Shown here: positions 1-22,331 of the stretch, one piece after another | Layout of the letters: every line of letters starts with the position of its first letter | Numbering within the stretch: the stretch's first letter is position 1 | Source: Perkinsela sp. CCAP 1560/9 | Lineage: Eukaryota > Protista > Euglenozoa: Kinetoplastea | Assembly: GCA_965644495.1 (NCBI GenBank) | Contig: CBFFSA010000002.1 | Coordinates: forward strand, 558,001-622,000 | Reading direction: 5' to 3' | DNA: 64,000 nucleotides | The notes under the pieces: generated by a model | The model's input: only the letters and a program-made list of their open reading frames with translations | Databases searched by the model: none | Told to the model about the DNA's origin: nothing | Translations under genes and position numbers: made by a program

Positions 1-77
1 AATATGAGACAACTGACGCACGAACCCGTGCAAGGTGGATCTCCCAGTGTGGCACGGGAGCGAGCAGCTGGGCCTTT

Positions 78-800
78 GTGACTCCTTCGAAAGACCTTGG
101 GCACGCCTTTACCCCCACACAATTCCGAACTTTGGCCCGTTGGTGGTTAGGCGTGGACATCTACCATGAAGATAGCACGTGCCCCATGCCGAAATGCTCG
201 CTCCCCCTTGACAGCAAAGGGGACCATGCACTGTCTTGCAAACATGGCCATGGTATTGTGACCAGGCACAACGCTGTTACGGACCAGTTCACGGACGTGT
301 GCAGTCGATCCCGCCTCGCCCCTCAACGAGAAAAGAGTCTCGGGAACAGGGGCCCAGGTGGGGCCCTCACTAGACCTGGCGACATATACTTGCCCAGCCT
401 TTTTCTTGGAAATCCCATTGTGCTTGACTTCGCGGTCACCCATGCTCAGCAATTAAAATATACGGACAAAGTCCGAAACGCTAGCTGGGTTGCCGCGGGG
501 TCATTTGCCGAACATTATTCCTCAATGGAGAAGGGCAAGCAGCGTCGAGAAGCCGTAGAAGCAGGATGCGACTTTACGGCCATGGTGGTCGAAAGTTATG
601 GCGCCTGGAGCCCCAGCGCTTCAGCCGTGCTCCGAAAAGTCGGTGAGAGGTGTTCGCACGCCTCGGGGGGTCTACTTTCGGAAGGTGAGGCAACGAGCCG
701 AATCTTCGCTGAACTAAACATAACCCTTATGCGCTTTCAAGCGCGCATGATGGTTGCTCGTTCACCTTCCGAAGACCCCATCGCAACTCTGGAGGAATAG
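78..800 (+). CDS. C-terminal CCHC + restriction-like endonuclease (RLE) domain of the retrotransposon polyprotein (5' end outside the window)
   Basis: Clearly paralogous to the C-termini of ORFs 6071-8431 and 11830-12432. Confidence 0.88.
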   Translation: MTPSKDLGHAFTPTQFRTLARWWLGVDIYHEDSTCPMPKCSLPLDSKGDHALSCKHGHGIVTRHNAVTDQFTDVCSRSRLAPQREKSLGNRGPGGALTRPGDIYLPSLFLGNPIVLDFAVTHAQQLKYTDKVRNASWVAAGSFAEHYSSMEKGKQRREAVEAGCDFTAMVVESYGAWSPSASAVLRKVGERCSHASGGLLSEGEATSRIFAELNITLMRFQARMMVARSPSEDPIATLEE

Positions 801-821
801 CCTCCAGAGCGGCCCGAGGCC

Positions 822-923
822 GATCGAGCCGACAGTGCCTATCCTCACGCCTCGCTTTCACGAGCAAGGTACCCCAATGTGAGACAGGTATGGATTCGGA
901 ATGTTCATCCGAATCCGGCGATC
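822..923 (+). ncRNA. Conserved structured 3'-UTR RNA motif 1 (other copies at 2915-3013, 12387-12477, 12513-12617)
   Basis: Stems CTCAC/GTGAG vs CTCGC/GCGAG and GCCTCGC/GTGAGGT vs GCCTAGCCC/GGGCTAGGT covary; conserved YCCCAR linker and AC(A/G)G junction. Confidence 0.7.
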
Positions 924-932
924 AAAACCCAA

Positions 933-1041
933 CTTCGTGACCGTGCCGCTGTCGGCACATGCCCGCGCCTGCGCCTTCCCGTATAACAAGGGAAGGGTTC
1001 CCAAGCCAGGCCGTGGAGAGGTCGAGAGACCCGGTCCGAAG
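933..1041 (+). ncRNA. Conserved structured 3'-UTR RNA motif 2, multi-way junction (second copy 12622-12732)
   Basis: GTGCCG/CGGCAC vs GTGTCG/CGACAC; GGTC-GAGA-GACC vs GGTC-GAAA-GACC (GNRA loops); closing stem CTTCG/CGAAG vs GTTTCG/CGGAAC. Confidence 0.7.
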
Positions 1042-1319
1042 CGCGCACTGCTGGAAGAAGGAGTGGAGCACGCGCGGATTGATTTCTGGGGGGAAGTGAG
1101 GGAAAGCGGAGGGCAAAGTTTGGAAGGCGCGGATGGATGCTCGGGGGGGGGGAAGTGAGGGAAAGAAGCGGGTGAAGTCGGGAAGTCGCGGATGGTTTCT
1201 TTGGGGGGGGGGGGGAGAAGGGAGAGAAGCGGGCGAAGTTGATAAGGGCGAAGTAAAGTAAGTAGGAAAGTAAGTAAGAAAGTGATACCGTACATTTATA
1301 GAAAGTTAAAAAAAAAAAT

Positions 1320-1355
1320 CTTTAACGATAAAGATACAGTTTCTGTACCTTGTTG
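1320..1355 (+). other. Spliced-leader (mini-exon)-like sequence, copy 1
   Basis: CTTTAACGATAAAGATACAGTTTCTGTACCTTGTTG; contains the kinetoplastid/diplonemid SL core ACAGTTTCTGTAC and ends in TTG. Confidence 0.88.
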
Positions 1356-2066
1356 AATTATTTCTCCTTTTCTTTCCTACAACATCTTCTGGACCATGGG
1401 AGGGCACCCCCCTCAAATTCTCACTCTGTTGCCGGCAACCCTCCTCCCTCTCTCATCCCATCATCCCCTCGCGTCATGTCTCCCCACCTCTTCCTCCCGC
1501 CTCTGCGCGCTCGTTGTTCTTCTGTCTTTCTCTCTTGCGTCCCCCACCCCCGTGCCAGCAGCCCAAAGTATTGTATACTTGCTCACGGGGTGGGGGCAGA
1601 GTTCCAGACGGATGGGCTGCGGCGTCGTTTTCCCTCGTCTCCGCGTCCGTCCCGCCATGTCCCTCTTCCCGCTTTTTGCCCTTGGCGCGACGGCGTCTTT
1701 GCGCTTCGTTACCTCCACGTCTCCCACCCTCGTACAGCAACTCAAAGTATCTGATACTGCTAACGGGGTGGGAGCGGAGGTCACCTCCACATCTCCCACC
1801 CTCGTACAGCAACACAAAGTATCTTATACTGCTAACGGGGTGGGAGCGGAGGCTCTGGACCACATGGGCGCTCGCGCGGACGAGTCGGTATAGGGTAGGG
1901 GGTAAGGACGGGGATGGATGAGAGGGTTAAGGGAAAGTGTGGAAAGTGGGGAGTAAGTACGGTGAAGTGGGGAGAGTAAGTACGGTGAAGTGTGAAAAGT
2001 GTGCGAAAGTGTTCGAAAAGTAGATAAAAACGTTAAACTCAATACTATCCCCCCCCCAAAAAAAAA
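1320..2066 (+). mobile_element. Non-autonomous SL-headed unit 1 (no RT; three repeated long hairpins; purine-rich tail, C9-A9 end)
   Basis: SL head; repeats near 1541, 1720 and 1792 (CCCACCC(C/T)CGT..AGCA..GTAT-nnn-ATAC..TGCT..ACGGGGTGGG); ORF 1396-1893 has no recognisable domain. Confidence 0.7.
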
Positions 2067-2067
2067 G

Positions 2068-2103
2068 CTTTAACGATAAAGATACAGTTTCTGTACCTTG
2101 TTG
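2068..2103 (+). other. Spliced-leader-like sequence, copy 2
   Basis: Identical 36-mer following A9-G. Confidence 0.88.
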
Positions 2104-2143
2104 AATTATTTCTTTTTCCTTTCTCTACTACGTTTTCTGTTTT

Positions 2144-2887
2144 ATGACAGAATCTTTTCCTTGCAGCGAGGATGACTACGAATCTGATTGCAATCTCTCT
2201 GAGCCGTTCGACCCAGGGGACACAGGCACATCTTATGAGGAAGACATCGCATACTATGGTGAACCGGTTTTTCCTCTCTCGCGACGCCTGGCACATTACG
2301 CCAGTAGGAATTGTAACAGACTGGAGGATTGGGTTTGGAATCCTTTCGAGCCACCTCTTTCTGGGGAGACGACTTACGCGTTGTGGTGCGACGACGCTTA
2401 CCACACACTCTCAAGGATTCATACCCAATCCTTGGACCTTTGCCACCTCCTCCTCAGTGAACTTAGAGGTTCCGGGCGTGCCCATCGAAATCTCGCCAAT
2501 GATCTTTTGTGTGAGCTGCCCAGCGCCAAAATACCATTCCCCGCAGAACATACGAACGAGGCTCTAATAAGCATCTGGTATGAGAATGCCATGGATGCCG
2601 TTGGAGAGACCGTATGTTTATTAGAATCCTTCATGGAGAGGGTCGATAAGCTTCGCGTGTCGACTGGTCACCTGAAGACAACGGAGGTTCCTCTGCACCT
2701 AGTAGGCCCGAAAGCCGTCATGGCGATTAGGACCCAGCGGGCGGGTACGTTTACCTTCGACCGGGTAGATGAAGTTACTAATCTCAATCAAAAAATGTGT
2801 AACCTCTCAGCTAACTCGGTGTCAGCGGGCGGCCATGTCAACAAGAACGCGCGAAAGCGGGCAGAACGTCGAAGGACAGGCCGGTAA
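2144..2887 (+). CDS. Hypothetical 247-aa protein (acidic N-terminus, basic NLS-like C-terminus)
   Basis: Uninterrupted ORF starting at the first ATG, 40 nt after the SL; no domain recognised. Confidence 0.65.
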   Translation: MTESFPCSEDDYESDCNLSEPFDPGDTGTSYEEDIAYYGEPVFPLSRRLAHYASRNCNRLEDWVWNPFEPPLSGETTYALWCDDAYHTLSRIHTQSLDLCHLLLSELRGSGRAHRNLANDLLCELPSAKIPFPAEHTNEALISIWYENAMDAVGETVCLLESFMERVDKLRVSTGHLKTTEVPLHLVGPKAVMAIRTQRAGTFTFDRVDEVTNLNQKMCNLSANSVSAGGHVNKNARKRAERRRTGR

Positions 2888-3108
2888 AGGCACCTGGGAA
2901 AGTCCTCGGGGGTTGATCGTGCTGACGGGGCTAATTCTCGCGCCTCGCTTTTACGAGTGAGGTTCCCAGTGCGAGGTAAGTGGGTTTCGAAGTTGTTTCC
3001 GGACCCGGCGATCTGCACCTTGCTTAGTGATCTTCTTGCGCGAATGACTTGGAGGTCGTGGGGAAGTGGAAAAGGAGAGGGGGTAGGGGAAAAAGTTAAG
3101 CGGAAAAC

Positions 3109-3168
3109 GGGTAAAGGGAAAGTGGGTAAAGGGAAAGTGGGTAAAGGGAAAGTGGGAAAAGGAAAGTG
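3109..3168 (+). repeat. (GGGTAAAGGGAAAGT)n 15-bp tandem repeat in the purine-rich tail
   Basis: Three exact copies plus one degenerate copy. Confidence 0.85.
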
Positions 3169-3414
3169 AATAAGTGGAAAGTCGTTAACGGGAAAGCGGG
3201 TAGGTGGAAACGCGTTAACGGGAAAAAGTGGGTAAGATACGGGAATGTTAAGAAATGAAGTAGGAAAGTCGTAGTAGTATAAAAGAAAAGTTAGAATTCG
3301 TACTCAAAAAAAAAAAAAAAAAAGTATAACCACAATACCAGCGCCACTTCGAATTTCCTGAGAACTAACCATACTCTTAATAGAAGCATCCGTATATATC
3401 TGCAAAAAAAAAAT

Positions 3415-3472
3415 CTTTAACGATAAAGATACAAAAAAAAAACGATAAAGATACAGTTTCTGTACCTTGTTG
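3415..3472 (+). other. Spliced-leader-like copy 3, interrupted by A10 flanked by a 12-bp duplication
   Basis: CTTTAA-CGATAAAGATAC-A10-CGATAAAGATAC-AGTTTCTGTACCTTGTTG. Confidence 0.88.
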
Positions 3473-3514
3473 AATTATTACCTTTTTCTTTCATTAATCA
3501 ATTACAAGACACCA

Positions 3515-4765
3515 ATGAATGACCCTCGATCAGGGGGGAAGCTCTGGTGTTGCCACTGTGGCACGCGTTTCGTCCCACAGAGCCCCTCCCATCGCTTTTG
3601 TGTGAAATGTTCACCCAAATTCGTACCCCCTCCTGCACAACCTGTTATCAGGTCGTATTCTCCGTTCAAGACTTCCGCGCCGAAATCTGTTTCCTCCCTT
3701 ACCGTGGCCCACAAAAAAATATGTGTAGCTTGCTCTGCCCCCTTTTCCCCTGCCAGACCATACTTCCGGTGGTGTGAGACATGCTCGCTATCCTTTTCAA
3801 ACGCTCCGTCGGCGTCGAAAACGTGCGAACTATGCGCTTCCTCGTTTTCTCCTTCGCGCCACTACTTTAAACGCTGCGATGAGTGTGATATGCTACCCGC
3901 ACAAAAACGTACCATCGCCTCTTCTCCCAAACCCTCTCACGGTGGGGGTTCGATACTCCCACTTCGTTCCACTGCGCCTTTCAAAGGATCTCACCGACGC
4001 AGTACCTACGCTCAAGCGGTTGGATCACATGGCAGCGACCGCCCGACATCCGCACCTACTCATCTTGGCGCAAATTCAAACGAGCCTAAATCGGACCAGT
4101 ATCGCCCGCTTTCTCTAGAAGAGCGCCTATCCTTAATCGACAAGGCTCAGAAGGAGTCTCAGCCCCAGAGTTCAAAAAGAACCCGTGCGCCCAATGAAGG
4201 ATTCTTGGGGTACATCGCAGCGTGCTCGGAAGCACAGAAGTTTTCCTCGGCGGTGACACAGCTTCTTGCACAGGAGGAACTAGCCCGACACAAGATTTGC
4301 ATAGCAAATCTACAAGTCATAAAGCAGTACTACATTGCCTTGACCCGTAAACTTTCCATCACCAAAAAACAAGGACACGTATGCTCTAAATGTACGAAGC
4401 AGTTTATGGACGCTTCCCTTCTAAACGAGCACCAGCAAACCCATCTTGAGCACGACATCAAGAGGGCCTTCCGATTAGCTCTAGAAGAGAGGGAGAAGAC
4501 CATCCTAGAAGAGAGTAAAGCATTTGAGTCAGTTTTGCTACCCATGGTACGGTACTCTGGCCAATCAGCCCTACGAAACCCCCCCTTCCCTCCTCGAGAA
4601 ATTTGCGACATTCCCATAGAGGAATGGATGGACGACGACGACGTCGAGCAAGAACCAGGAGATACTAGCGTGGACGTCCACCTTCGCTTTTGCCCGAACT
4701 CCGTCACAAGTATTCGAATAAACCAGTTATCTCAGAACCATCCCCTGCAATTTGCACAGTCTTGA
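3515..4765 (+). CDS. ORF1 of unit 3: three CxxC..F.P..CxxC zinc ribbons and a C2H2 finger
   Basis: CCHC..FVP..CVKC, CVAC..FSP..CETC, CELC..FSP..CDEC, CSKC..F.....L..H...H; first ATG 42 nt after the SL. Confidence 0.8.
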   Translation: MNDPRSGGKLWCCHCGTRFVPQSPSHRFCVKCSPKFVPPPAQPVIRSYSPFKTSAPKSVSSLTVAHKKICVACSAPFSPARPYFRWCETCSLSFSNAPSASKTCELCASSFSPSRHYFKRCDECDMLPAQKRTIASSPKPSHGGGSILPLRSTAPFKGSHRRSTYAQAVGSHGSDRPTSAPTHLGANSNEPKSDQYRPLSLEERLSLIDKAQKESQPQSSKRTRAPNEGFLGYIAACSEAQKFSSAVTQLLAQEELARHKICIANLQVIKQYYIALTRKLSITKKQGHVCSKCTKQFMDASLLNEHQQTHLEHDIKRAFRLALEEREKTILEESKAFESVLLPMVRYSGQSALRNPPFPPREICDIPIEEWMDDDDVEQEPGDTSVDVHLRFCPNSVTSIRINQLSQNHPLQFAQS

Positions 4766-7700
4766 TCTCAACTGCACTATCGGACAACTTGCCGGTACCT
4801 CTGTGAGCGCAGCACTTCAGTGTGCTCCTCAATCTAGTACGATCCCAGGCAATAGGACAGCAGTTTTCACCCACCCAACGGGGCGAACCCTTATTGCCAT
4901 CCCTCGAACCACTCCCCCTGACCGGTGCCCTTTCGCCCTCTGCAATCAAATTGGTATCGACACGGAATTTGCCACTGCGTGGAAAGAAATTCCTTCCCCG
5001 GACGGACCGCTCTGGTGTTTCGCCCCGACGCGAGACCTAATTGCTCAATCTGGATGGAGCAAAACACAAATCGATATCGGTCTTATGCGAGGGGGGGTGG
5101 AATGGAACCCAGGCCCTCAATACGTAGCCCGAAACTCAATCCCACCCACCCACGAGCTGGAAGCTAATACAGGATGGACCCAGCGCTCCGCGCAGATGGA
5201 ACTCTTTCGTGGGGGTATAGAACAAAATCCGGGCCCTAAAAACTCGTACTCGGCTCACCGCTCCGTTCTGCTCCAGTCTAACAGCGTCAATGCTGCTACA
5301 CTTTCGAATTTATTGCCTACCGAGACCCGAGAATGCCCGGCCGAAGGCTGCTCCTGGAGCTCAGCGTCTCATGGAGGTCAATGGCAGGCATATTTCAACC
5401 ACGTGGCCCTTCGGCACAGTGATACCGTTTCCGAAGATTGGTGGACATCCCATGGAAGGTTCCTTTGCTCTTCTTGCAGGAAAAACTACGACCTAGCCAA
5501 GAAAACCTCCCACCTCGGCTCATGCCCCGCAGGCACCGACCCTCCTGCTGCCTCTCCCATTGATCCTCAGGTTTCATCACCAGACCACCTTAGGGAGTCG
5601 CCTACCGACTTACCGTCCCTTCGCACCATATGCAGTACCCCGATGAACACCTGTAAAAATGTCCCTTATCGATGTCGGCAACTGTGGGCCTCAGTGCTGA
5701 CAGATGTCCTCTACTAAGCGGTGAAGGACAACACCGTAACCGCCTGGACGTTGTTAGCCATGCTGCCGAAATGTGTACTCCCTGCACCCCACCGCGTCGG
5801 TCGAAAGGGTCACACATCATATTCTAATCATGTAAAGGGGTCGCTTCTGCGGTGGCAGTCAGGGGAATATGCCTCCCTCTGGAAGAATGCGGAGAGCGAC
5901 TTCCTAAAGAAGCGAGACGTCTCCGCTCGCATAGGAATGACGCGAACAGAAGTTCGGGCAGATCTTCTCGCACGGCAAGGCGAACTTTCCCGAGCCATCA
6001 CAGCCCTCATCTCGTCCCCTTTGGCTCCGGACAACGCTGAGTCCCTCGCCAAATTTCAGAAAAAACATCCTTGTCGCCTTCCCACTCTAGCGCCACACAC
6101 GTTTCCCACCACAACAGAGATCCAGGAACACCGAAAAAGCTCCAGGTCACCGAAAAAGAGCTAGAGTCGGTTGTGAAATCCTTTCGTCGTTGCTCCTCGG
6201 GTGGCACCATGGGTCTCCGCCCGGAGCACATCCAAGAGGCCCTGCTGGTGAACATTGATTCAAAGACCAAGCCCCTCGCAGCCCTCACTGACCTTATTAA
6301 TCTCCTTCTGTCGGGTAAGGCTCACCTTGACTCCCACGAATATTTCGCCGGAGCTCGTCTCTGCGCACTGCAGAAAGGCGAACAGGACATCCGCCCAATA
6401 GCCGTAGGTGAAACTATTCGTCGCATCGCAAGCAAGGCAGCCTGTGCGGCAAGCAAGGCGAAAGCAAGTACGTTCTTTCAAGGACAGCAATACGGTGTTG
6501 CCACCGCCGCTGGAGCCGAGCGCATGATTCACCTGTGTCGTCAGACGGTAACCAAGTACGCTGATGATACCGATTTCGTCCTGTGCAAAGTTGACCTCTC
6601 AAACGCTTTTAATAACGTTTCAAGATCCGCCTTTCTTTCCTTGACTCAGGAGCATTTCCCGAACCTCTCTAAATGGGTAGAATGGTGTTACGAAACGGAA
6701 AGCTATCTCACTTTCGGACAACACATAGTGCACTCCGCAGAAGGCGTTCAGCAAGGTGACCCCTTGGGGCCACTCCTTTTTTCCCTGGTAATCCGTCACC
6801 TCGCGGAGATCATCAACGCCGAGCTTCCCGAAGAACTCTTCCTGCATGTCTGGTACCTTGACGATGGAGTCCTCGCCGGAAAGGCAGCACTCGTCAAGCA
6901 AGCCCTCGACATCATCGCACGGGAAGGTCAACAACTCGGACTCCTTCTTAACACTCATAAGTGTGAATTGATTTTAAAGCCTCCATCCGCACACCGCGTC
7001 GCACTATTCCCTGAGATCCCGCAACAGAGAATCCTCCGCGACGGTAATTTCAGCATCCTCGGCAGCCCGGTGGGATCCGCGCAATACTGTAGTGACTACC
7101 TCCGGGAACACGCCTTGGCCCCAGCATTGTCCACACTCAGCGCTATAAAGAAAATCGACGACCCCCAAGTAGCACTAACCCTCATCCGCCAATGTTCTGG
7201 CTTTTGCCAGCTCGTCTTCTCCCTCCGAGCAACACCTACCAAACCCTTATTAGACCTATGCTCAAGCCTCGACACCGCGGTGATACAAGCATTAGAAGAC
7301 GCGCTTTGCTCACTCAATCCTCCCGGACGCGTCCAGGCTCAGAGCAGAAAGGAATATGGCGGCTTCGGTCTTCACTCCTCGTCTCTCTTCTGCTCAGCAG
7401 CATACGTTTCCTCTGTCTCTTTCGCAGCGAGCCAAGACGGATGGGACGCGCTGGATGCAGAAGGTTTCCGCGAGGCAATGGCCCACGTAAACGAACTGTC
7501 CGACAAACCCCTCATCGACGTACATACAGGGTACCTCTCACCAGAGGATCCAGAGTCCCCACCGGCAAGTCCAACTCCGCCTAAGCAACAAACCATTTCT
7601 CGAGCAATAGCCGCCCGAGAATTCTACCGCGCGCTCGAGGCTGCTGATCAGGAAACGAGAGCGAGATGGCTCTCTCAAAGCGGGGAAGCGGCCGCAAACT

Positions 7701-8431
7701 GGGCCTTTGTCCTCCCATCCAAAGAGCTGGGGTACGCCCTTACCCCTACGGAGTTCCGCGCCCTGGCACGCTGGTGGCTCGGGGCAGACGTCTACGACAC
7801 CCCCCGCCCTTGCCCTATGGACAAGTCTAACCAACCGCTAGGATCTGATGGCCAGCATGCCCTCGCATGCAAAAGCGGCTACGGCCTCATCTCCCGGCAC
7901 AACGCCCTTGTCGAGCACTTCTGCGACGTGTGCACCAAGGCACACCTCGCCCCGCAACGAGAGGTCAGTCTAGGCAACCACGGCCCGGGCGGCGGCCCCA
8001 CCAGACCAGGCGATGTCTTCCTCCCAAACTTTGGCCTAGCTACCGGTTTGGTATTGGACTTCTGCGTAACTCACGTTCAGCAACCTACATATACGAACTC
8101 AGTCCGAGGCGCTAACGTGGGAAACGCAGGATCCTTTGCCGAACGGTACGCTACGGCACACAAACGTTTGGAGCGCCTCGAGGCCGAATCCCAAGGGTAT
8201 AGATTCACCGCGATGGCGGTGGAATCCTTCGGGTCCTGGTCGGAGAGCGCGCGGGGAATTCTCCGAGAAGTTGCCGAGCGCCGCTCAGCTGCTTCGCAGG
8301 GCACACTTTCGCGTGGAAAGGCCTTCCAACGCCTCCTCACGGAAATGAACGTGACCCTTATGCGAGCCCAAGCGCGCATGTTGGTACTCCGGATGCCCGC
8401 AGAAAACCTGCGTCCTTCGTTGCGCATGTAA
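4752..8431 (+). pseudogene. ORF2 of unit 3: 2A-like motifs, zinc fingers, RT, CCHC, RLE; in-frame TAA at 5715-5717 and a frameshift near 6130
   Basis: ORFs 4752-5717, 5721-6164 and 6071-8431 are collinear with the unit 4 protein. Confidence 0.9.
5091..5237 (+). other. Two 2A-like (StopGo) motifs, GGVEWNPGP and GGIEQNPGP
   Basis: 5091-5117 and 5211-5237; match (V/I)ExNPGP with G in place of the consensus D. Confidence 0.72.
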
Positions 8432-8535
8432 GGACGCGTAAAGTGTGGAAGTAAGTTGTTGTTGTTGTTGTTGTTGCTAGTAAGGACGCGTAAAAAAAAA
8501 GTATAATTAATATAGCTATTATAAAAAAAAAAAAA

Positions 8536-8571
8536 CTTTAACGATAAAGATACAGTTTCTGTACCTTGTTG
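8536..8571 (+). other. Spliced-leader-like sequence, copy 4
   Basis: Identical 36-mer directly after A13. Confidence 0.88.
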
Positions 8572-8607
8572 ACTTATTTTTCTTTCCCTATTTCTTTTAT
8601 CCGGACA

Positions 8608-11600
8608 ATGAGGGAGGCTGATTCATGCGGCTCGATGACGATACCAGAAGATGACCTTTTTGCCCAAGAGGAGAAAACACACACGCCAGGCTCCTGGGAC
8701 CAATTTGAGGGTAATCAGCATCTTATCGCTGCAACTAGTACATATGATGAATCCCTCTACACGACGCCAATATTACACCGGCCTGGCAAGACAAAATGGA
8801 AACGGCACTACATTCTTTGCACCGAGAGCAGACACCTGACACGGGGATGATTTTATCGGCAGACGAAGAGAGAAATCATTCCAGCGTATCAAGGGACTGT
8901 GCCCCCAATACGTCTGGCAAAGGTCAAGAAGTAACAAGCCAAACCCCAGAGCGGTACGAACCACATTCCATGGCCACAGCGAGGCTTCTCCTACGAAAAA
9001 GCCCTCTTTCTAGCCAAAAGTCGACGCCCAAAATTTTCGAGAGAGGGGTTAGTAAAGATTCCAAGACTCGCCAACCAGCTAGACGAGACACAATGAGACG
9101 TCGCACCTGTCCAGTCGAAGTGTGCAACTGGAGCACCGCAGCACACGGAGGGAAGTGGCAGGCCTACTACCATCACGTCGCAAGCCAACATAGCGATACT
9201 GTGCCTTCGGAATGGTGGGAAAAAGAAGGACGTTTCTTATGCCCCTCATGCGGCAAGCACTATGATCACAATAAAAAAGCTTCCCATGAGGAAAAATGTC
9301 AAGACTCCTTTAGCTCTTACACCTCGTCGCTAACCTGTGAGCCAGAAACCGAAGAGGCTTCCATTTCCCAAATTTACAAGGATTCGCTCCCGTCTCTTGA
9401 TTATGTCTGCTCTTACGCCATCAACACATGCAAAGATGTACCATTCCGATGCAGACAACAGTGGGCCTCCGTTTTGACCCAAACAATGGCTGCAGTGGTT
9501 AGAGAGAACTCGGTTGAGGCCTGGACACGCTTAGCGATGCTCCCAAAATGTGTCCTGCCCGCGCCCAAAAGAGGGGGACGAAAAGGAAATTCGTCCTATA
9601 CCACGAAAACGAGCCAACGCATGGATCGCTGGGAATCCAGGGAATACGCGGCACTGTGGAACGAATCTGTTGCGCAAATGGTAAAGAAGCGGGAGAGGAA
9701 CGACGATGAGGAAGTGGACGAGTCCGGCAAGGCGGCGAAACGAGCCGAGTTGCTGGCCAGACAAGGGGAGTTTTCCCGTGCGATGGCAGCTCTTACAGCA
9801 GCACCGATGGCACCTGAATCCGAAGAAACTTACGAAAAACTCCAATCGAAGCACCCAGGTAGATTGCCTTTATCATCTTCAGTCACATTCCGTCCATAGA
9901 AGGAGAGCCTTTACATCTATCCGAAGGCGAAGTTGAAAAGGCACTACGCAGTTTCCGGCGCGGAACATCGGCTGGCACCATGGGCCTCCGCCCTGAGCAT
10001 CTCCAGAGCGCCTTAGCAGCACACCCTGACGACAAGGTACAGCCGCTTTTCTATCTCAAGGAAGTCATGAACCTCTTGCTGTCCGGGAAAGGTTGTCTCC
10101 AAGTCCAGAAGTTCTTCGGCGGCGCCAGACTATGTGCCTTAGAAAAGGGAGAAAATGATGTCCGTCCTATTGCTGCCGGCGAAACAATAAGGCGACTTGT
10201 GAGCAAAGCGGCCTGCTCCGCAGTAAAGGAAAAGGCAAGCAAACTACTCTGGCCTCATCAATACGGAGTCGCAACACCTGCAGGGGCCGAACGCCTGATC
10301 CACCTGTGTAGGCACGTGATGGCCTCTCAGGCGGGAAGTTCTGATTTCACGCTATGTAAAGTGGATCTGCGAAATGCCTTTAACAACATCTCAAGAACTG
10401 CCTTTGCTGCACTTATGAGGGAGCACTTCCCGGAGCTCTCCCAGTGGGTTGAATGGTGTTACACCACCGAGAGTATTCTCACTTACGGTTTCCGTCAGAT
10501 TTCTTCAAAGGAGGGTGTGCAACAAGGGGATCCGTTGGGTCCTTTACTTTTTTCCCTCGTCATGCAACTGGTTACTACCGAGATAGATCGACAACTTCCT
10601 GGTCTTCTTAAGCTTAATCTGTGGTATTTGGATGACGGCATTCTCGGGGGGAAGGCTCACGACGTCAGACGAGCTTTAGACATCATCGAACGAGTCGGCC
10701 CACAGTGGGGCATCTTCCTAAACGCCAGCAAGTGCGAGGCGATTACACATCCTGAATCCGCCGAACACTTGGACAGCTTCGACAACATCCCGACGACTAA
10801 AAAGACAAGCGAGGGAAATTTTTCAATTTTATGTAGCCCTGTAGGAACGACTGATTTCTGCACAGAATTTCTCCGTGAACACACCCTGTTGCCTGCTGAA
10901 GAATCCCTAGCCGCGATCGAATACATGGAAGACCCGCAAGTTTCCCTCGCACTCATCCGACAATGTGCTGGTTTCAGCCAAATGGCATATTCTCTTAGAA
11001 CCACACCCACCAATTCCGTCCATGAGCTATGCGAAGAACTTGACACAGCAATACTGCATACCACGGAACGCTCTATATGTCCTTTAAATGAAGACGCTGC
11101 CGCACAAGTACAACGTCCAAAATCTTATGGTGGATTCGGGCTGCGCTCTTCAGCGATGCATGCCTCATCGGCGTACGTTTCCTCAGTCTCTTTCGCAGCG
11201 GATAAGGACAACTGGAACTCCCTCGACGCAAAAGATTTTGCTGATGCAATACTGGACGTCAATTCACGAGCGGGCACCAGCGTCCTGGAAGAGAAAACCG
11301 GTCTAATTTCCCCTCAGCACGCTTCCTCTCTCTCTCACCTCAAAAAAGTACTGGGTCTCCGTGGATCAAAACGACCTCTCCCGGCGAATCTTTCCGTAGC
11401 ACCACCCGGAGACACGACGACCACTTACTTTGAACAAACGAAACTCGACCACGAATTTTCATCTTCCAACGACCGAGTCGCACGCCAAAAGGTGCTCAGC
11501 CGTGCAATTTCTTCCCGCGAGTACACCGATGCATATCAGAAAGCTGATCCTCAAACGAGGGCACGTTGGATATCTCAATCTGGAAAAGGGGCAGGTGACT

Positions 11601-12432
11601 GGCTGTTTGTCACGCCCTCCAGGGAAAAGGGGCACGCCTTTACTAAAACGGAGTTTCGCACCCTGTGCACCTGGTGGCTAGGACAAAAAGTATATCCAGA
11701 AACACACCCCTGTCCCGTCTCAGGATGCACGCTTCCGATGGGACCACAAGGAGACCACGCATTGGTCTGTAAACACGACTACGGGATCTCGGCGAGGCAT
11801 AATGCCTTGGCCCTCCAGTTCTTTGACGTTTGTCAAAAGGCCAATTTGTCTCCGAAAAGGGAGCACAGCCTCGGCAACAGAGGTCCAGGGGGGCACTCAC
11901 AAGACCAGGGGATGTGTTCCTTCCGAGCTACACGCTCGGTAAAGGCCTTGTCTTTGATTTTGCGGTGACCCACGTCCAGCAACAGAAATATACGGACCTG
12001 GTCCGTTCTGCTGGCATGGTAGCTGCAGGGGCCTTCGCAGAGAAATATGCGACGAACCACAAGCGTGGACAAAGGCAAGAGGCTCTAGAGGCCGGACATG
12101 ATTTCACCGCCATGGTAGTGGAATCGTACGGATCATGGAGTCCGACGTCCCTCCATATGCTGAAGAAGATCGCGGGAAAAAGAGCCGCAGCATGTAAGGG
12201 TGATATGTCCGAGCAAACGTCAATGTTTTTTCTTCTCCAGGACATGAACGTTACGCTCATGCGGTCTCAGGCACGAATGCTTGTAAGACGCATGGCAGAC
12301 GTGGATATCCATGCCAGTCTCGCTTTACTGCACGAGGCACCCTCTGACACCACACCGAATCGTGCCAGCTGCGGACCGGCAGGAGCGATCGAGCCTACAG
12401 TGCCTATTCTCACGCCTCGCCTTCGAGAGTGA
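8608..12432 (+). pseudogene. Unit 4 polyprotein (LsmAD-like, zinc fingers, RT, CCHC, RLE), frameshifts near 8770, 9900 and 11890
   Basis: ORFs 8566-8850, 8796-9899, 9980-11968 and 11830-12432; WDQFEGN..STYDESLYTT at the N-terminus. Confidence 0.85.
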
Positions 12433-12957
12433 GGTACCCCAATGTGAGATAGGTAGGGATTCGGACTGACAGTCCTATTTCAGCACGAAGACACCATGGT
12501 ATCCAGGACGGGTGCTGGTCGGGTCGACAGAGTCTATACTCACGCCTAGCCCGCGAGGGCTAGGTACCCCAAGTGAGGTAGCACACGGGTAGTGAATCTC
12601 CTCCCCGTCGGCCAGCATCCTGTTTCGTGACCGTGTCGCTGTCGACACAGGCCCGCGCCTGCGCCCTCCCATATAACAAGGGAAGGGTTCACAAGTCAGG
12701 CCGTGGAGAGGTCGAAAGACCCGGTCCGGAACGCGCGAATGGATTGGGCATGGATTGCTTGTTTTAATTTTTACTGTTTTTCTTGTTTGTAGTATATACT
12801 TAGGGGAGACTAAATTGCTAGTTTTGGGCTGAGAAAAAAGGTACATCTGTGGAAAGAAAAAGAATTGCTAATTTGATTGCTTGTTTTCAACTCGTATCCC
12901 CCCCCCCAAAAAAAAAAGATCAACCTTTTTGTAAGCAAAAAAAAAAAAGAAACATCA

Positions 12958-13660
12958 AGCCGCTCGCATGTAGTGTAGAGCCGCTGTTGTTACAGCGTTG
13001 AGCCACTCATGCTGATGGAATGGAGCGTTGAGCCGCTGTCAATACAGCGTTGAGCCGCTCGCATGTAGTGTAGAACCGCTGTTGATACAGCGTTGAGCCA
13101 CTCATGCTGGTGGAATGGAGCGTTGAGCCGCTGTTGATACAGCGTTGAGCCGCTCGCATGTAGTGTAGAGCCGCTGTTGATACAGCGTTGAGCCGCTCGC
13201 ATGTAGTGTAGAGCCGCTGTTGTTACAGCGTTGAGCCACTCATGCTGATGGAATGGAGCGTTGAGCCGCTGTCAATACAGCGTTGAGCCGCTCGCATGTA
13301 GTGTAGAGCCGCTGTTGATACAGCGTTGAGCCACTCATGCTGATGGAATGGAGCGTTGAGCCGCTGTCAATACAGCGTTGAGCCGCTCGCATGTAGTGTA
13401 GAGCCGCTGTTGATACAGCGTTGAGCCACTCATGCTGATGAAATGGAGCGTTGAGCCGCTGTTGATACAGCGTTGAGCCGCTCGCATGTAGTGTAGAGCC
13501 GCTGTTGATACAGCGTTGAGCCACTCATGCTGATGAAATGGAGCGTTGAGCCGCTGTTAATACAGCGTTGAGCCGCTCGCATGTAGTGTAGATCCGCTGT
13601 TGTTACGGCGTTGAGCCACCCAAAGCCGGTTGAGTCGCTGCACGAAACAGTGTTGAGCTA
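12958..13660. repeat. Compound minisatellite of alternating 43-bp and 52-bp units (95-bp higher-order unit)
   Basis: Core CAGCGTTGAGCC(G/A)CT; recurrent mini-hairpin GCTGT-TGAT-ACAGC. Confidence 0.95.
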
Positions 13661-13807: not shown

Positions 13808-16798
13808 ATGGTTTGCTTGTTGTTGCTTGTTGTTTATTTTCCCCTACTTTTACGACCCTTCATGACCTCGCCACATGCCAGAAGTGGGGAAATCTCACAG
13901 GCGTTGCAGGACTCTCATAAGAGACTAGGCAACGTAACTAGCCGATCCGCCACCTCTCTGACAGGTGCTGAACGCGAGGCCAAGGAACATGCAGCTCAAC
14001 ATGCAAACTCCTACCGAGTCAGCTCCAAAGCTCCTATGAGAGGTTCACTGAAAACAAACACTGAAAAGAAGGAAACCGCAATAAATACGACCCGGCGATG
14101 TAAACATACTTGTAAGGAGAAAACAAAATGCGGCCATCCCTGCTGCAAGACTGCGCCGAATCCGCCGTCCACTCAGCCCCTTAACATTTCACAATGCAAG
14201 CATCCCTGCAAAGACAAGAGTCTGTGCGGCCACCCATGTTGTAAACGACATCTTCTTCCTACCTGTGTTCCCGAAGATAGTACCACACATGTATCCCAAG
14301 GGAATACTGTTACCGATGTAACGAGGAGGACGGAAACAAACACAATGTCCTCTGAAGCCCCACCATCTGAAGGAGTAAAGGATGTACCTGAACCTATCGC
14401 CCCGTGCAAACATATCTGCAAGGATAAGGCGAATTGCGGGCACCCCTGTTGTAAACGTCACCTCCACACCACTTGTACGAGCGCCGGTAGTGCACCTAGA
14501 CTAGATCCACAAAGCAGTACGCGCGACAATGGGAGTCAAAATCTGGCAGGAGACTCTGGGGGCTTTATGGTGAAAGTACTGCGCCACTTGACCAAGCCCA
14601 TATTTCAATGTGCGGGCAAACCCCAAACTGCGCAGAACTCCTCGAACACGGAAGTGTTTTCACCCAGCGGCAGATCCACAAGCGAGGGCTCCAACCACTA
14701 CGAACGCTCAAGGAAACACGTCGAGGGAGAAATGTCGGCGAAGAGAAAATTGATTGCCCCAGGAATCGCAAGATCAAACAGCGACAACCCTGCTACAACG
14801 CATGCCAACAGAGCTGATCAGCGTGAAGCAAGTAAGGTGCCCACCTTTCGGAAATCCCCTTCTTCTCCTCCGGAAGGAAAACAACATACTATCTCCTCAA
14901 CAGCTATCAATCTTGCGTATGAATTATGTAAAGGCCTCCTTGGCATCCCTCCCCCGGAAGCACGAGCGAAACCACCGCCTCTCAGAAAGATGACTCCCAA
15001 GACCGTAAACCGAGGGTCCCAACTATCTCCCAAGCGAGAATCTCCCGAATTCGCTATAGAAAAGCTGCAGGAAGGACCGATATTGCGCCTCAGCGCTCGA
15101 CAGCCCGAACCAGAGCCTCAGAACCCATACAATCTACCATGTAAACATCCCTGTAAGGACAAAACCACGTGTGGCCACCTTTGCTGCAAAAGAGGGCTTA
15201 CCCCTGGCATCACAACATCGTCACCCGCACGTATCTCTTCCTCTGATACCGAAAAGCACCCCCCAGACCGGATAACTGATGAACCATATCGCGACCATCC
15301 CAGCAGCACGCCCGAGCACGACGCAGGGGTGGACACTTCCGACAACTCCAAAGCAGAGAAAGTCCCGTACCTCCCTGCCCCTTTATCGCCGCCACAGAAT
15401 CTTTCGATAGTGCCGGAGTCCTGGAACGTCTCGTTCACGCCTAGTCCCACACGCCGCGGCGTAGAGAAACTACTTATTAATCGTATAAAGTCACCCCACC
15501 ATACCGACGACTCAGAAGGACTCTTGACAGAACCACCGTTCCCTCTCTGCACTGCGGACGACGAAGTTCCGGAATGGGTATTCGAGAAGGTCCCTCACGA
15601 CGTGCCTTCTGGGAATTCGGGGGTCCCTGTAGAAAGACGTCGCTCGACAGAGAAAGGGAAACAATGCCTACATTTTATACAATCCCGATCAAAGCCTCTG
15701 AAACTTCGCCTAGCAAGTGCCCAAGAATGGTTATATTTTCCGGACGTACGAGCTGCCTGCGAAAGTCAAATCACACGCAGCAGGATTAGCTCCCTGCAGG
15801 GAGCGCAGGCAGCCATTTCGAAGGCGCTGAACTCTGGCAACCCCACGCACGACATCATAGTAAGAGGATGTTCCGTAGAAGAACTGATGGACCATGGGGC
15901 GTGCGATTTCATTACAATTCACAAAGTCGGAAGCCCGGACAAGTCTTCGCGCCACTCCAGTTGGGTATCTCTGTACCAGGATGCAGCCCTAAAACTTTCA
16001 GATTACTATTCCTCTCCGGGTACTCTCAGTAAAGCCGTTCTTAAGAGACTAAACGGCTCCGAAATTCCCGGGCTTGCAGATTATGTGATAACCCTACATC
16101 GACACACACCCATCGACGAAACTCCGCCGGTCTTAGAAGCTATTCCGGAGCTTCCAGCATATCGCATAGCAGACCCACCCAGTCGTGTACCCTCTTTGCA
16201 ATCCTTTGCACAACCCTGCCGCCACACCTGCCGCGACAAACTCGGGTGTGCTCATCGTTGCTGTAAAGTCTTCGGTCCCGCTGCTCCTCCAACTGCAGGT
16301 TCCACTGCCGCCGAGACCAGCTCTGCCCAGGAATCCAAAGTACCTCGCTCGGCGGTTCCACCAGACCTGCAGGAGTATAAAGAACAGGATCTCGATTACC
16401 TACTCCGAACAGCCAGGTACATCCAAGGGGGAAAGATATGTATCAACTTAACGGACGCACAGTGGCACGACGTTGAGACCAAGGCTCTCAAAAGGTGTAG
16501 TGCATTACTCACTCCTGAACAAGACATAGATTCCGCCGTTAGGAACGCCGAACTCCTGAGCTCCATACTATCTGTCTCTACCTACGAGGTTGCTCGCGAC
16601 GTGAATCCCACGAAAGGCTTTTTAATCCGCACAAAGAAAGGTCACGCAAAGACCCGATGCAGACCCTTGGAAAGCGAAAAAATAGCCTCGTCCTTCTCCC
16701 GGCACCTAAAAGAACTGCAGACAAAACTACGCTATACACATGGAAAGGCAGACAGGAACGCCTTAAAACGAACGATCAAGGAAACCAAAAAAAGGTGA
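13808..16798 (+). CDS. Long N-terminal ORF with five CxHxCK(D/E)KxxCGHxCCK motifs
   Basis: Motifs start at 14099, 14195, 14405, 15140 and 16217; probably joined to the RT ORF before lesions at 16790-16940. Confidence 0.8.
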   Translation: MVCLLLLVVYFPLLLRPFMTSPHARSGEISQALQDSHKRLGNVTSRSATSLTGAEREAKEHAAQHANSYRVSSKAPMRGSLKTNTEKKETAINTTRRCKHTCKEKTKCGHPCCKTAPNPPSTQPLNISQCKHPCKDKSLCGHPCCKRHLLPTCVPEDSTTHVSQGNTVTDVTRRTETNTMSSEAPPSEGVKDVPEPIAPCKHICKDKANCGHPCCKRHLHTTCTSAGSAPRLDPQSSTRDNGSQNLAGDSGGFMVKVLRHLTKPIFQCAGKPQTAQNSSNTEVFSPSGRSTSEGSNHYERSRKHVEGEMSAKRKLIAPGIARSNSDNPATTHANRADQREASKVPTFRKSPSSPPEGKQHTISSTAINLAYELCKGLLGIPPPEARAKPPPLRKMTPKTVNRGSQLSPKRESPEFAIEKLQEGPILRLSARQPEPEPQNPYNLPCKHPCKDKTTCGHLCCKRGLTPGITTSSPARISSSDTEKHPPDRITDEPYRDHPSSTPEHDAGVDTSDNSKAEKVPYLPAPLSPPQNLSIVPESWNVSFTPSPTRRGVEKLLINRIKSPHHTDDSEGLLTEPPFPLCTADDEVPEWVFEKVPHDVPSGNSGVPVERRRSTEKGKQCLHFIQSRSKPLKLRLASAQEWLYFPDVRAACESQITRSRISSLQGAQAAISKALNSGNPTHDIIVRGCSVEELMDHGACDFITIHKVGSPDKSSRHSSWVSLYQDAALKLSDYYSSPGTLSKAVLKRLNGSEIPGLADYVITLHRHTPIDETPPVLEAIPELPAYRIADPPSRVPSLQSFAQPCRHTCRDKLGCAHRCCKVFGPAAPPTAGSTAAETSSAQESKVPRSAVPPDLQEYKEQDLDYLLRTARYIQGGKICINLTDAQWHDVETKALKRCSALLTPEQDIDSAVRNAELLSSILSVSTYEVARDVNPTKGFLIRTKKGHAKTRCRPLESEKIASSFSRHLKELQTKLRYTHGKADRNALKRTIKETKKR

Positions 16799-16964
16799 AA
16801 GGGTTTATCATGCGGAGGCCACCGCACAGCGGCAAACACTCGAACAACGCCGGGCACTGAAACGCTTTAACAGAAACCCATGGACCGCCGCTAGCGAAAC
16901 ATTGGACAAACCTCGGTCTTGAAACATCGGTCTTGAAGCCCCAGCCTCCTATCCTACATGCGAT

Positions 16965-19355: not shown

Positions 19356-19729
19356 GCTAGTAAAACAGCCTATGCGGGGTCGTCGTATGCGACCGTAGCA
19401 TAGGTAGAAATTTACCTCTGCAGATCTAAATATGATTCTGCATTCAATAAACACAATGGTAGGGTTGGTTACCCTAGTCTAGACGCAGCCTAGTAAGGGG
19501 TCACCAACCCATCATTATCACGGCGTAGTATACACGCCTTGGCAGGCCTGGCACCGAGTAGACGAGAAAAAAAAAGGAGGAAAAAATAAGGATGATTCGA
19601 TTAAGACATAGTCTAAGCATCGTGCGTATTTGCATGTATTGGCAACATTATTTCCTTTTAAAATTTATTTTAATCATGATGCGCCGAAAGGGGTCGGCTT
19701 CAAGCTAAGAAGGCGTTAATCAAATTGAT

Positions 19730-20719
19730 TTGCCCGAAAATGGGCCACTGGAATGTGAGCGATCCTTACCAGTAGCTTTCGCCGAAGCCACTTGGGACGC
19801 TTCTCGTTTTTTACGATATGATATGCCCTTCGAGCTTTCCTTTATCGTATCACTCCTCCACGGAGCCCCAGAACTCTCCATTCAGACCACGTTCCTTGAG
19901 TTTGTGGACAAGGAGTTCGCTCATAAAGCGAAGCATGAACGCTCCTTGATTGCGCAATCTCTAATGAAAGCACGGAAAACGAAAAATCATGAGCTTCTGG
20001 CATCGATACTTGATGACCAAGTCAAGAAACGTTCGTTGGTAGAACTTATTCTTGAGCCACCTAAGCCAACAAAGAAAGTAGATTGTCGCTCGACCGACGG
20101 GGACACAAATGAACAACTCATCGGATGGATTGGGACAAAGCAATGCCCATGTATTGACGGGGCGTTGTGGCATGCGCTGAATGAAGATATGTTGTTTAGG
20201 AACTTTTCGAACCCCTTGCTCAGTACTGCCTTTGGTGAGCACTTCGGTGGTCTTTTTGTTAGCTCGGGGAAAGGACGCGTTCCTCCAGAAATTCGAGGCA
20301 ACGAAAGTTTAATTATTGCGGCGAATTACTTTGTTTCTGAGCTGGCAGCTCTTTTTCTCGCGTTCAAAAGTGGATGCAAAGAGGCCACCGGAAATCGATG
20401 CATTGCACCTTGCCGCACGAGTGTTGGACTTATTCATTCTCAAGATAAAATACATATTCCAGCTGAAGTTCATGCGTCGTTGGAGACGGAATCAAGTGAA
20501 AAGAAAATTTTTAATCGGAGTGAAGCAGCAAAAAACTATCCTAAACGACAATATCGTCGGGACAAGCATAAGAGCTTTGTCGGCCACTCTCATCCTTATA
20601 AATTTCAGCGTCTGCCGCACTTAAAATATGTGCGTGCCCACGAAGAACCTCGGTCAGGAACAGTGGTGCGGGGGGAACGGAATGCCCGAGGTTTGTTGAC
20701 TCGTCAGCATGCTAAGTAG
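19730..20719 (+). CDS. Putative gag-like ORF1 of the YR element
   Basis: Position only; basic C-terminus; no diagnostic motif. Confidence 0.45.
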   Translation: MPENGPLECERSLPVAFAEATWDASRFLRYDMPFELSFIVSLLHGAPELSIQTTFLEFVDKEFAHKAKHERSLIAQSLMKARKTKNHELLASILDDQVKKRSLVELILEPPKPTKKVDCRSTDGDTNEQLIGWIGTKQCPCIDGALWHALNEDMLFRNFSNPLLSTAFGEHFGGLFVSSGKGRVPPEIRGNESLIIAANYFVSELAALFLAFKSGCKEATGNRCIAPCRTSVGLIHSQDKIHIPAEVHASLETESSEKKIFNRSEAAKNYPKRQYRRDKHKSFVGHSHPYKFQRLPHLKYVRAHEEPRSGTVVRGERNARGLLTRQHAK

Positions 20720-21282
20720 CATTCAGGCGAATGGAGTCGACTTGGTAGCTTACGGAGAAGTTTTAAAAATATTTCTGAATCTGTTTGCTTTCTCTTTCAT
20801 AATAATGCATATTTTCGACTTAGCAGGAATAGTTATTTGTTTCAGACGAATGCGGCGAATATATTACGCGACTTATTAAGGGAAAGGAAAGCAACGGCTC
20901 ACATCTATTTTCTCTATCAATATCGTGTGGATTCTTCTGGGGGTAGAATTATGGAGTAACAGAAAAATATGTATTAGGTATGATGTGCTTCAATCAGTCA
21001 TCATTTTTTATATATTGATTATCGGACAAATTTCTTGATAGAATCAGTGCAGTGCGCACCATTCTGGAATACAGAGTTTGAATCTAAACAACAGATCAGG
21101 TAAGAAAACAGATCAGTTAGAAACAGAAATACGAACACTTAGTAGACTTTGTAAGTTTCAAGAGTGAGAGTAAGCAAGATTCCAATGACTTACACTGATA
21201 CATAGTGTCTGTAAAATAATACTAAAGCCAAAGCTCTAAAGTTCTCTATAAAAGAGCATACTGCATATTCGGCGCTACTCTC

Positions 21283-22182: not shown

Positions 22183-22331
22183 AATGTTTGTGATACTAAT
22201 ATAATTAGTAGGATAATAAAGGGTAATACCAGGGGATGGAAGTAAATGGTATTAAATGATGTCATTATTCCGTATTTTGCCTAGACTGTTAGCTGGAAGC
22301 GCAACAGTAAGAGTTTTACCCATGTTTTAGG

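Follow-up and report, generated by a model that had tools for sequence, protein, structure and literature searches.

The retrotransposons SLACS, CZAR, CRE1, and CRE2 sit inside spliced leader (SL) RNA genes, between exon nucleotides (nt) 11 and 12, where they are flanked by the split gene. GilM/GilT of Giardia and the Zepp clusters of Chlorella are head-to-tail arrays of retrotransposons that lack long terminal repeats (non-LTR). The HeT-A/TART/TAHRE elements of Drosophila telomeres form head-to-tail non-LTR arrays as well (PMC5537684). A DNA-encoded SL marks copies of trans-spliced mRNA genome-wide in the DinoSL-relic retrogenes of dinoflagellates (PMC5585692, PMC6050394, PMC8045281), and the L1Tc/ingi elements of trypanosomatids possess the Pr77 5' module and a 2A peptide (PMC1874656). 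We found no description of SL-headed retroelements in Euglenozoa in the literature. With polycistronic transcription and caps supplied by trans-splicing, the route by which mobile elements obtain a translatable full-length RNA is a puzzle. Here we describe an array at one end of a 64,000-nt stretch of DNA from Perkinsela sp. CCAP 1560/9 (G000:C2:558001-622000, in an assembly of 21 Mb and 110 contigs), the whole of which is referred to as the window. Positions 1-12917 of the window are a genuine head-to-tail stack of DNA copies of trans-spliced, polyadenylated RNAs, made up of three retrotransposons encoding a reverse transcriptase (RT) and a restriction-like endonuclease (RLE) together with non-autonomous riders. 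The stacking is real and far above chance, and it is a property of the poly(A) tails rather than of the SL.

All units in this region have the same orientation, and each starts with a 36-38 nt SL exon and stops in poly(A). Exact matches to the 32-nt SL core are present on the forward strand at 1324, 2072, 3441, and 8540 (n = 4, chance expectation 0.00). The chain is composed of the following pieces:

1..1318 (+): unit 0, of which the 3' 1.3 kb lies in the window; RT/RLE retrotransposon with the end of the RLE coding region at 78-800, 3' untranslated region (UTR) motif 1 at 828-895, and a purine-rich repeat tail followed by A11 (1308-1318)
1319..2066 (+): unit 1; T and SL (1320-1355), then a non-coding retroposon of about 700 bp resembling a short interspersed element (SINE), ending in A9 (2058-2066)
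2067..3323 (+): unit 2; G and SL (2068-2103), a 247-aa orphan open reading frame (ORF) at 2144-2887, 3'UTR motif 1 at 2918-2985, and A18 (3306-3323)
3324..3413 (+): unit 2b; headless (no SL) 80-nt fragment with an A10 end, taken to be a retro-copy with extreme 5' truncation
3414..3472 (+): disrupted SL head of unit 3; T and the first 18 nt of the SL (3415-3432), roughly 10 A residues (3433-3442), and the SL from nt 7-9 to its end (3443-3472)
3473..8535 (+): body of unit 3; Cys/His-rich N-terminal ORF (3515-4765), two 2A-like NPGP motifs (about 5090-5237), an RT (PF00078) and RLE ORF with frame breaks (6071-8431), a short 3'UTR, and A13 (8523-8535)
8536..12917 (+): unit 4; SL (8536-8571), ACTTATT leader, LsmAD-like N-terminus (8608-8850), RT (9980-11968), and RLE (11830-12432) with about three frame breaks, two copies of 3'UTR motif 1 (12393-12460 and 12523-12590), and A10 (12908-12917) at an early alternative poly(A) site
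12918..12948 (+): unit 4b; 19-nt fragment and A12, the final poly(A)-ended piece of the chain
About 12950-13620: satellite with a period of about 130 bp, estimated by eye, directly flanking the array

Read from the sequence, the joint of units 0 and 1 consists of A11, T, and the SL, that of units 1 and 2 of A9, G, and the SL, and that of units 3 and 4 of A13 leading directly into the SL. Between units 2 and 3, the A18 is followed by the 80-nt fragment with its own A10 and then by the split head of unit 3, in which the A-run is bordered by a 12-14 nt duplication of SL sequence (CGATAAAGATAC); this interruption resembles a poly(A)-only abortive insertion. No SL follows the A10 of unit 4, which gives way to unit 4b and then to the satellite; the two tiny poly(A)-ended pieces (3324-3413 and 12918-12948) also belong to the chain. 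At the other end, unit 0 starts 3262 nt upstream of the window with A8, T, and an SL at C2:554736, counted as the sixth head; farther upstream lie AT-rich DNA, unrelated to the chain, and a Tc1/mariner-like remnant. The whole array is located within a 1.53-Mb contig, between this remnant and the satellite. The SL is followed by AATTATT in units 1-3, ACTTATT in unit 4, and AATTCC in unit 0, then by a pyrimidine tract, with an ATG 36-42 nt past the SL at 1396, 2144, 3515, and 8608. A sequence-only reading of this DNA had described a co-oriented poly(A)-SL-unit chain with A(A/C)TTATT, a pyrimidine tract, and an ATG in place of a GT donor after the SL, an internal insertion in the third head, and no SL RNA intron or SL repeat spacer between units. 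These claims are borne out by the joints and the four SL cores in the window, where neither a GT intron nor an SL-gene spacer separates any of the units, and the head upstream extends the chain.

To describe what follows a tail, we collected 126 distinct joints after A-runs of at least 10 nt from all sequence fetched. A full SL follows the tail at 13 of these joints and a partial SL at four (17 in total), about 30 lead into 5'-truncated, SL-less bodies of known units, and several of the 71 unassigned joints read like interiors of diverged RT/RLE genes. Viewed from the SL, 186 full heads for which the upstream 20 nt were listed were classified by eye: about 59 (some 32%) stand behind an A-run, about 24 (some 13%) behind a partial SL, and a further 24 or so in a single, constant repeat context, with the rest in unrelated DNA. 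Since tails lead about twice as often to SL-less truncated bodies as to SL heads, and two thirds of the heads are not behind poly(A), the stacking appears to be directed by poly(A).

The sequence-only reading had instead proposed that each unit, through its own SL, recreates a target at which the next insertion can occur. On such a model the array would be a self-renewing recognition site, by which a CRE/SLACS-like specificity would have moved from the SL genes to the element heads. The third of heads that follow poly(A) would fit such a target, as would the A-run with its flanking duplication inside the SL of unit 3, the heads found behind a partial SL, and the presence of an R2-like endonuclease, given that such enzymes are usually site-specific. 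The joint counts run the other way, and most SL heads lie in unrelated, non-A contexts, while the last unit here and many tails of the unit-4 family lead to unrelated DNA. In addition, the partial SLs end at scattered positions, from nt 12 to nt 21, which argues against a site-specific cut. Both SL RNA genes are intact, and their flanks occur at no other SL copy, so insertion into SL RNA genes in the manner of CRE and SLACS finds no counterpart here. We therefore regard the SL as a very improbable target. Poly(A)-stacking of retro-copied mature RNAs, with the SL as a passenger mark of RNA origin rather than an insertion target, is probably the correct description of the array.

The 36-mer is the genuine SL exon of this organism, as the sequence-only reading had assumed. 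Two tandem SL RNA genes at C1:661295 and C1:661592, 297 bp apart (G000:C1:661295-661671), carry the identical exon (AACTTTAACG...CCTTGTTG) followed by a GTATGAG intron starting GTATGAGAAGC, and a 5S rRNA gene, the sole Rfam match at this locus, adjoins them. The 119-nt SL RNA is predicted to fold into three stem-loops, the first spanning the exon-intron border (-48.9 kcal/mol, z = -6.4), and the exon contains a CAGTTTCTGTAC core that we take to be typical of kinetoplastid and diplonemid SLs. An Rfam scan of the window at gathering scores returned no match. Direct RNA evidence is weak: one small sequencing run of uncertain type, guessed to be RNA, contains high-depth contigs in which the SL is followed by differing sequences, with the SL internal in one contig. 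Two retro-copies of the unspliced SL RNA, comprising exon, intron, and an A-rich end, are present at C2:801555 and C1:410085 (within G000:C2:801350-801950 and C1:409850-410350) and have a downstream flank in common. In this assembly both SL RNA genes are uninterrupted and contain no inserted element, and an SL-gene promoter-proximal flank joined to an SL occurs only at these two intact genes at up to three mismatches, in an assembly where SL genes may be under-represented. That each unit carries its own SL independently of the SL genes is accordingly upheld, the heads having neither intron nor SL-gene flank. An extended SL variant that includes AATTATT was considered and ruled out, as indels distinguish the leaders of different families and AATTATT is absent from the SL genes. 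The assembly contains only these two canonical SL RNA genes, very few for a trans-splicing organism, and an SL array may therefore be absent from the assembly or collapsed.

SL heads are a mark of RNA-derived copies genome-wide and across families. The SL 5' 15-mer has 262 exact sites in the genome, and the 3' 16-mer about 637 (one mismatch allowed, anchor base included), followed by many differing sequences. At 86 sites in the assembly the SL is followed by GT, and nearly all of these among the matches listed are not genes but heads of another retroposon family (GTAC(A/T)TTTT...). Members of this family, found at about 80 loci, start with an SL that is often shortened, to a varying extent, at its 5' side, and a strongly structured region comes after the GTAC(A/T)TTTT. 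One of its heads lies in the window at about 32041-32078 (-), and its SL+GT heads could be mistaken for SL genes. For annotation, it follows that most SL matches in this genome do not represent SL genes and that poly(A)-SL chains should not be dismissed as cDNA contamination.

Several features point to RNA as the source of the copies: the use of alternative poly(A) sites, untemplated bases at joints, massive 5' truncation, and a base difference next to the cap. The heads of the copies lack the intron. In the unit-4 family at least five alternative poly(A) sites are in use, and there are 411 candidate 3' ends compared to 11 5' ends. Extra untemplated bases (CT, GACT, GGGGT) occur between tail and SL at some joints. 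Among 33 distinct SL heads examined, the distinct flank contexts that are not A-rich number 21, and in 19 of these a T precedes CTTTAACG; the exceptions are the SL gene, with A (the tandem pair taken as one context), and the retro-copied unspliced SL RNA, with G. Among retro-copies, T is thus found in 19 of 20, against A in the two SL genes, providing a cap-proximal record of RT behavior. This T may be a misread modified cap-proximal nucleotide, an untemplated RT addition, or the product of an SL gene variant missing from the assembly. Sibling copies can differ at this position, which is G in unit 2 and T in its 98% identical twin.

Other SL-containing loci have their own histories. At G000:C36:3400-4100, C36:13700-14400, C52:2400-3100, and C21:4500-5100, an SL is bracketed by a repeated stretch, the opening 25-35 nt of an exon, in the order acceptor AG, exon start, SL, and exon start repeated, then GTATGAG in the C36/C52 case; these loci look like cDNA of a trans-spliced RNA rejoined to its own gene. 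An identical upstream sequence (...AGAAGCACACGTACAATAAT) invariably precedes the SL head whose leader is ATTATTTAC, at about 25 loci (e.g., G000:C10:74300-75300); the SL-headed unit in question is therefore part of a larger repeat, which has been multiplied as a whole. Regular tandem arrays of SL-headed units with a period of about 2.28 kb are found at G000:C30:267-11689 and C62:27148-45418 (at least six and at least nine copies), and another at C1:2477612-2492924 has a 5093-bp period and four copies. Such constant periods suggest DNA-level amplification on top of retroposition.

The autonomous members are, as judged from sequence and a modeled fold, RLE-type (R2-like) non-LTR retrotransposons. 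An RT domain (PF00078) was detected in unit 3 (E = 4e-16), in unit 4 (E = 5e-18), and in P0128, an intact 1338-aa ORF in the protein collection that is related to the units (50-55% identity). The RT/RLE proteins of units 0, 3, and 4 are 50-57% identical to one another, and units 1 and 2 have no RT by Pfam, in agreement with the earlier count of three diverged RT/RLE units and two without RT. Unit 0 aligns to P0128 in a single frame over about 1060 residues (-2487 to 776), and frame breaks are present in units 3 and 4. P0128 consists of an LsmAD-like N-terminal motif, Cys/His fingers, the RT, and a C-terminal region with CCHC and PD..D..K motifs, in which the C, C, H, C, and D residues are near-invariant across 23 aligned C-termini. 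The best PDB sequence matches of the element proteins are R2 proteins. The endonuclease domain had no match in PDB by sequence alone, and a comparison of folds was needed. An AlphaFold model of the P0128 C-terminus (predicted local distance difference test, pLDDT, 85.6) retrieved R2 proteins as its top seven Foldseek matches (E = 6.6e-7 to 7e-4), with PD-(D/E)xK nucleases next; R2 of Taeniopygia and R2 of Bombyx are among the former (E = 6.6e-7, TMq 0.59). The assignment to the RLE type draws on the RT domain, the R2 matches in PDB, and this R2-like fold model. Three features of RLE-type elements were looked for and found: the RT domain, a CCHC and RLE region after it, and a poly(A) 3' end with frequent 5' truncation. 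The nearest named homologs are unnamed sponge proteins with 33-41% identity.

Two further features of these proteins are recorded here. The N-terminus resembles the LsmAD domain of ataxin-2/Pbp1 (SWDQF..N....STYDE.LYTT; window 8608-8850, P0128 residues 40-98), but PF06741 matches P0128 at E = 1.4e-4 and the window copy at 0.012, neither of which reaches the curated Pfam cut-off; a relative, P0019, bears a PABP MLLE domain. The two 2A-like motifs in the N-terminal ORF of unit 3, GGVEWNPGP and GGIEQNPGP, lie 39 codons apart (5090-5237).

Units 1 and 2 are non-autonomous retroposon families. Unit 1 contains no Pfam domain, and its family comprises at least 40 copies that are 79-99% identical; all 11 unit-1 matches that were cross-checked start about 20 nt past a listed match to the SL 5' part, i.e., right after an SL head. 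The unit-2 family has two full-length copies (98% identical, the second also SL-headed and behind poly(A)) and five 5'-truncated ones. 3'UTR motif 1 is common to units 0, 2, and 4 and to several other families, with the order CTCAC, GCC, hairpin, GGTWCCCCAAT, GTGAG. In its proposed pairing, 92.8% of cells are paired and six of 16 pairs covary with both sides changed; no score as high was reached in 500 shuffles, and slid controls were only 27-50% paired. The motif is likely a handle by which an RT-less unit borrows the RT machinery. The proposal that cargo without RT is carried along is in keeping with these results, the RT-less units belonging to SL-headed retroposon families and unit 2 possessing the 3'UTR motif of the RT elements. 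A 3'UTR loop complementary to the SL 3' end was also considered; it reads AACAAG in units 0 and 4 and two other families, but AGCAAG in several young copies, is absent in further families, and was not relied on.

We propose that mature RNAs, SL-trans-spliced and polyadenylated, would be copied to DNA by the R2-type RLE non-LTR reverse transcriptases. The whole 38-nt SL would be kept in a full-length copy because reverse transcription reached the capped 5' end of the RNA. RT-less families would be copied in trans, at least one of them with the structured 3'UTR element of the autonomous families. New copies would preferentially join the poly(A) tail of a resident copy, and the units would be chained for this reason. 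The most likely route would be target-primed reverse transcription, with priming on the T-tract complementary to a resident tail; co-orientation fits an RNA tail priming on such an opposite-strand tract. What the data show directly are the identity of the SL, the RNA-type ends, the family membership of the units, and the counts of what comes after a tail; T-tract priming, trans-mobilization by way of the 3'UTR motif, and the order of insertions are inferred.

A less likely route would be a jump of the RT from one RNA onto the poly(A) end of another. Carried through, this would yield concatemers in a single integration, the RT passing from the capped 5' end of each RNA to the tail of the next. 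End-to-end template jumping is an established in vitro property of the R2 RT, and the joining of unrelated families and tiny poly(A)-ended fragments with a few untemplated bases at the joints is what it would be expected to produce. Partial SLs, consisting of the 5' part and once inverted, lie directly upstream of full SLs at some heads and resemble 5'-end re-copying; re-copying or switching at the capped end may account for them. Against this, many joints enter 5'-truncated bodies, where the template was left internally, and separate abortive insertions fit these better than end-to-end jumps. The array as a whole has no flanking duplication, and there is no sign of a single common event, with unit 4 being 98% identical to many copies and the closest relative of unit 3 just 69%. 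We consider one-event concatemers unlikely for this array, and separate insertions at existing poly(A) tails are the preferred account.

A number of points weigh against this account. The loci of the joint sample were picked by unit-4-family ends, and the sample is therefore enriched for repeat islands. In six solitary insertions no target-site duplication of at least 7 nt was found, and the integration mechanism is therefore putative. The data do not separate sequential insertion from one-event template jumping, the heads behind a partial SL are not specifically predicted, and the model provides no explanation for how SL-headed copies are re-expressed with the same SL/leader border. Finally, no contig of independent runs (four DNA-type runs and one possible RNA run) spans any joint, the short-read contigs breaking at SL and poly(A), and the order of units given here is therefore that of the assembly.

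This last point is also what would be expected if the chain were a mis-assembly of repeats or of cDNA-like molecules. The same architecture recurs, however, at dozens of loci on many contigs with differing tail lengths, joint bases, and partners, which makes an artefact unlikely. The array is also placed well inside its long contig, between identifiable flanks, and the depth of DNA-run contigs over the unit bodies is like that of low-copy sequence. We give the artefact explanation hardly any credence.

How SL-headed copies stay active is a separate question. In the unit-4 family, an SL heads each of the eight copies that have a complete and readable 5' end; seven of these stand behind A13-A31 tails, and the eighth, with a cut SL, lies in unique DNA. 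The pattern (A/T)G followed by the AATTATTTT-pyrimidine leader has 80 genomic matches, 76 with the TG of the SL and four with AG that are T-runs rather than leaders; an AG acceptor before genuine AATTATTTT leaders was thus seen in none of 76 cases in the assembly, and no source copy with a trans-splice acceptor was found. The encoded SL/leader border reads TTG|AA, which is incompatible with a normal acceptor. Only one or two relics of re-splicing within the SL were seen, and a flank search of the assembly found no SL-gene promoter joined to an element. There are two possibilities: transcription of SL-headed copies from around SL position 1, or sources that escaped detection. The element families look recently active, judging from copies that are 97-99% identical in the unit-4 family and from the intact ORF of P0128 among close relatives.

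These observations, namely the SL on all 5'-complete copies, the 76:0 ratio of TG to AG, the lack of an SL-gene promoter on the elements, and the apparent recent activity, allow a tentative suggestion, to which we give less than even weight, that the SL and AATTATT-pyrimidine leader form a heritable DNA-encoded 5' module of several retroposon families, with SL-headed copies themselves serving as sources transcribed from about SL position 1. By analogy, the promoter would be internal, as Pr77 is in L1Tc, or located in the 3'UTR of the upstream neighbor, as in HeT-A arrays. If so, the elements could do without a trans-splice acceptor, and a function would be gained by stacking. With several unrelated retroposon types and hundreds of copies that begin with a complete SL, this genome offers a clean test system for whether a DNA-encoded SL can act as a 5' module. 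In this kinetoplastid-like genome the SL is also a natural label of RNA-derived DNA, a kind of label that to our knowledge has so far been exploited only in dinoflagellates.

The window outside the array is also a repeat island (13808-24110, 52912-53922, 58715-59557). It contains another non-LTR element with RVT_1 and zf-RVT domains (16965-19355), upstream of which there is an ORF of 996 aa. An RT that carries an RNase H-like domain lies at 22332-24110, and a Tc1/mariner transposase and a fragment of an LTR-type RT-RNaseH are present as well. We saw no housekeeping gene in the window.

A comparison of this locus with described systems shows both resemblances and disparities. Like SLACS, CZAR, CRE1, and CRE2, the elements possess an RT followed by CCHC and RLE regions, Cys/His fingers upstream of the RT, poly(A) tails, and an association with the SL in a trans-splicing organism. 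Unlike those elements, they are headed by the whole exon, have no intron or gene flank, and leave both SL genes intact, and their insertion sites are diverse: poly(A), unique DNA, or other repeats lie upstream of the 186 heads, in place of the SL-gene site of CRE-type elements. As with L1Tc/ingi, these are retroelements of a lineage with polycistronic transcription and need their own 5' solution, and there is a 2A-like NPGP motif in an ORF and a short 5' leader common to autonomous and non-autonomous members. L1Tc/ingi elements are, however, of the apurinic/apyrimidinic endonuclease (APE) type, with an internal promoter in the first 77 nt and an unspliced RNA, whereas here the 5' module would be the SL and AATTATT-pyrimidine leader, with a function that is only putative.

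As in the DinoSL-relic retrogenes, an SL at the 5' end tags RNA-derived copies throughout the genome. The dinoflagellate relics carry a full SL followed by 5'-cut older SLs, arising from re-trans-splicing at the AG inside the SL; nearly all heads here have a single full SL, and the carriers are mainly retrotransposons and their riders. The co-oriented tail-to-head chains, mixing autonomous and non-autonomous members, are like those of HeT-A/TART/TAHRE, GilM/GilT, and Zepp, which are telomeric or use other endonuclease types; the array described here is internal to a 1.5-Mb contig, beside a satellite, and has an SL on each member. Among contigs of relatives from other samples, one of which looks chimeric, no kinetoplastid-type SL core was seen. 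In Logan contig L082 from another sample (4924 nt, positions 721-810), a relative with about 40% identity starts 70 nt past an A19 that ends the upstream sequence, and from this single case tail-to-head stacking may be a trait of the element group beyond this genome. Taken together, the elements work like other RLE-type non-LTR retrotransposons, while their SL tagging parallels that of the DinoSL relics and their chains parallel those of HeT-A/TART.

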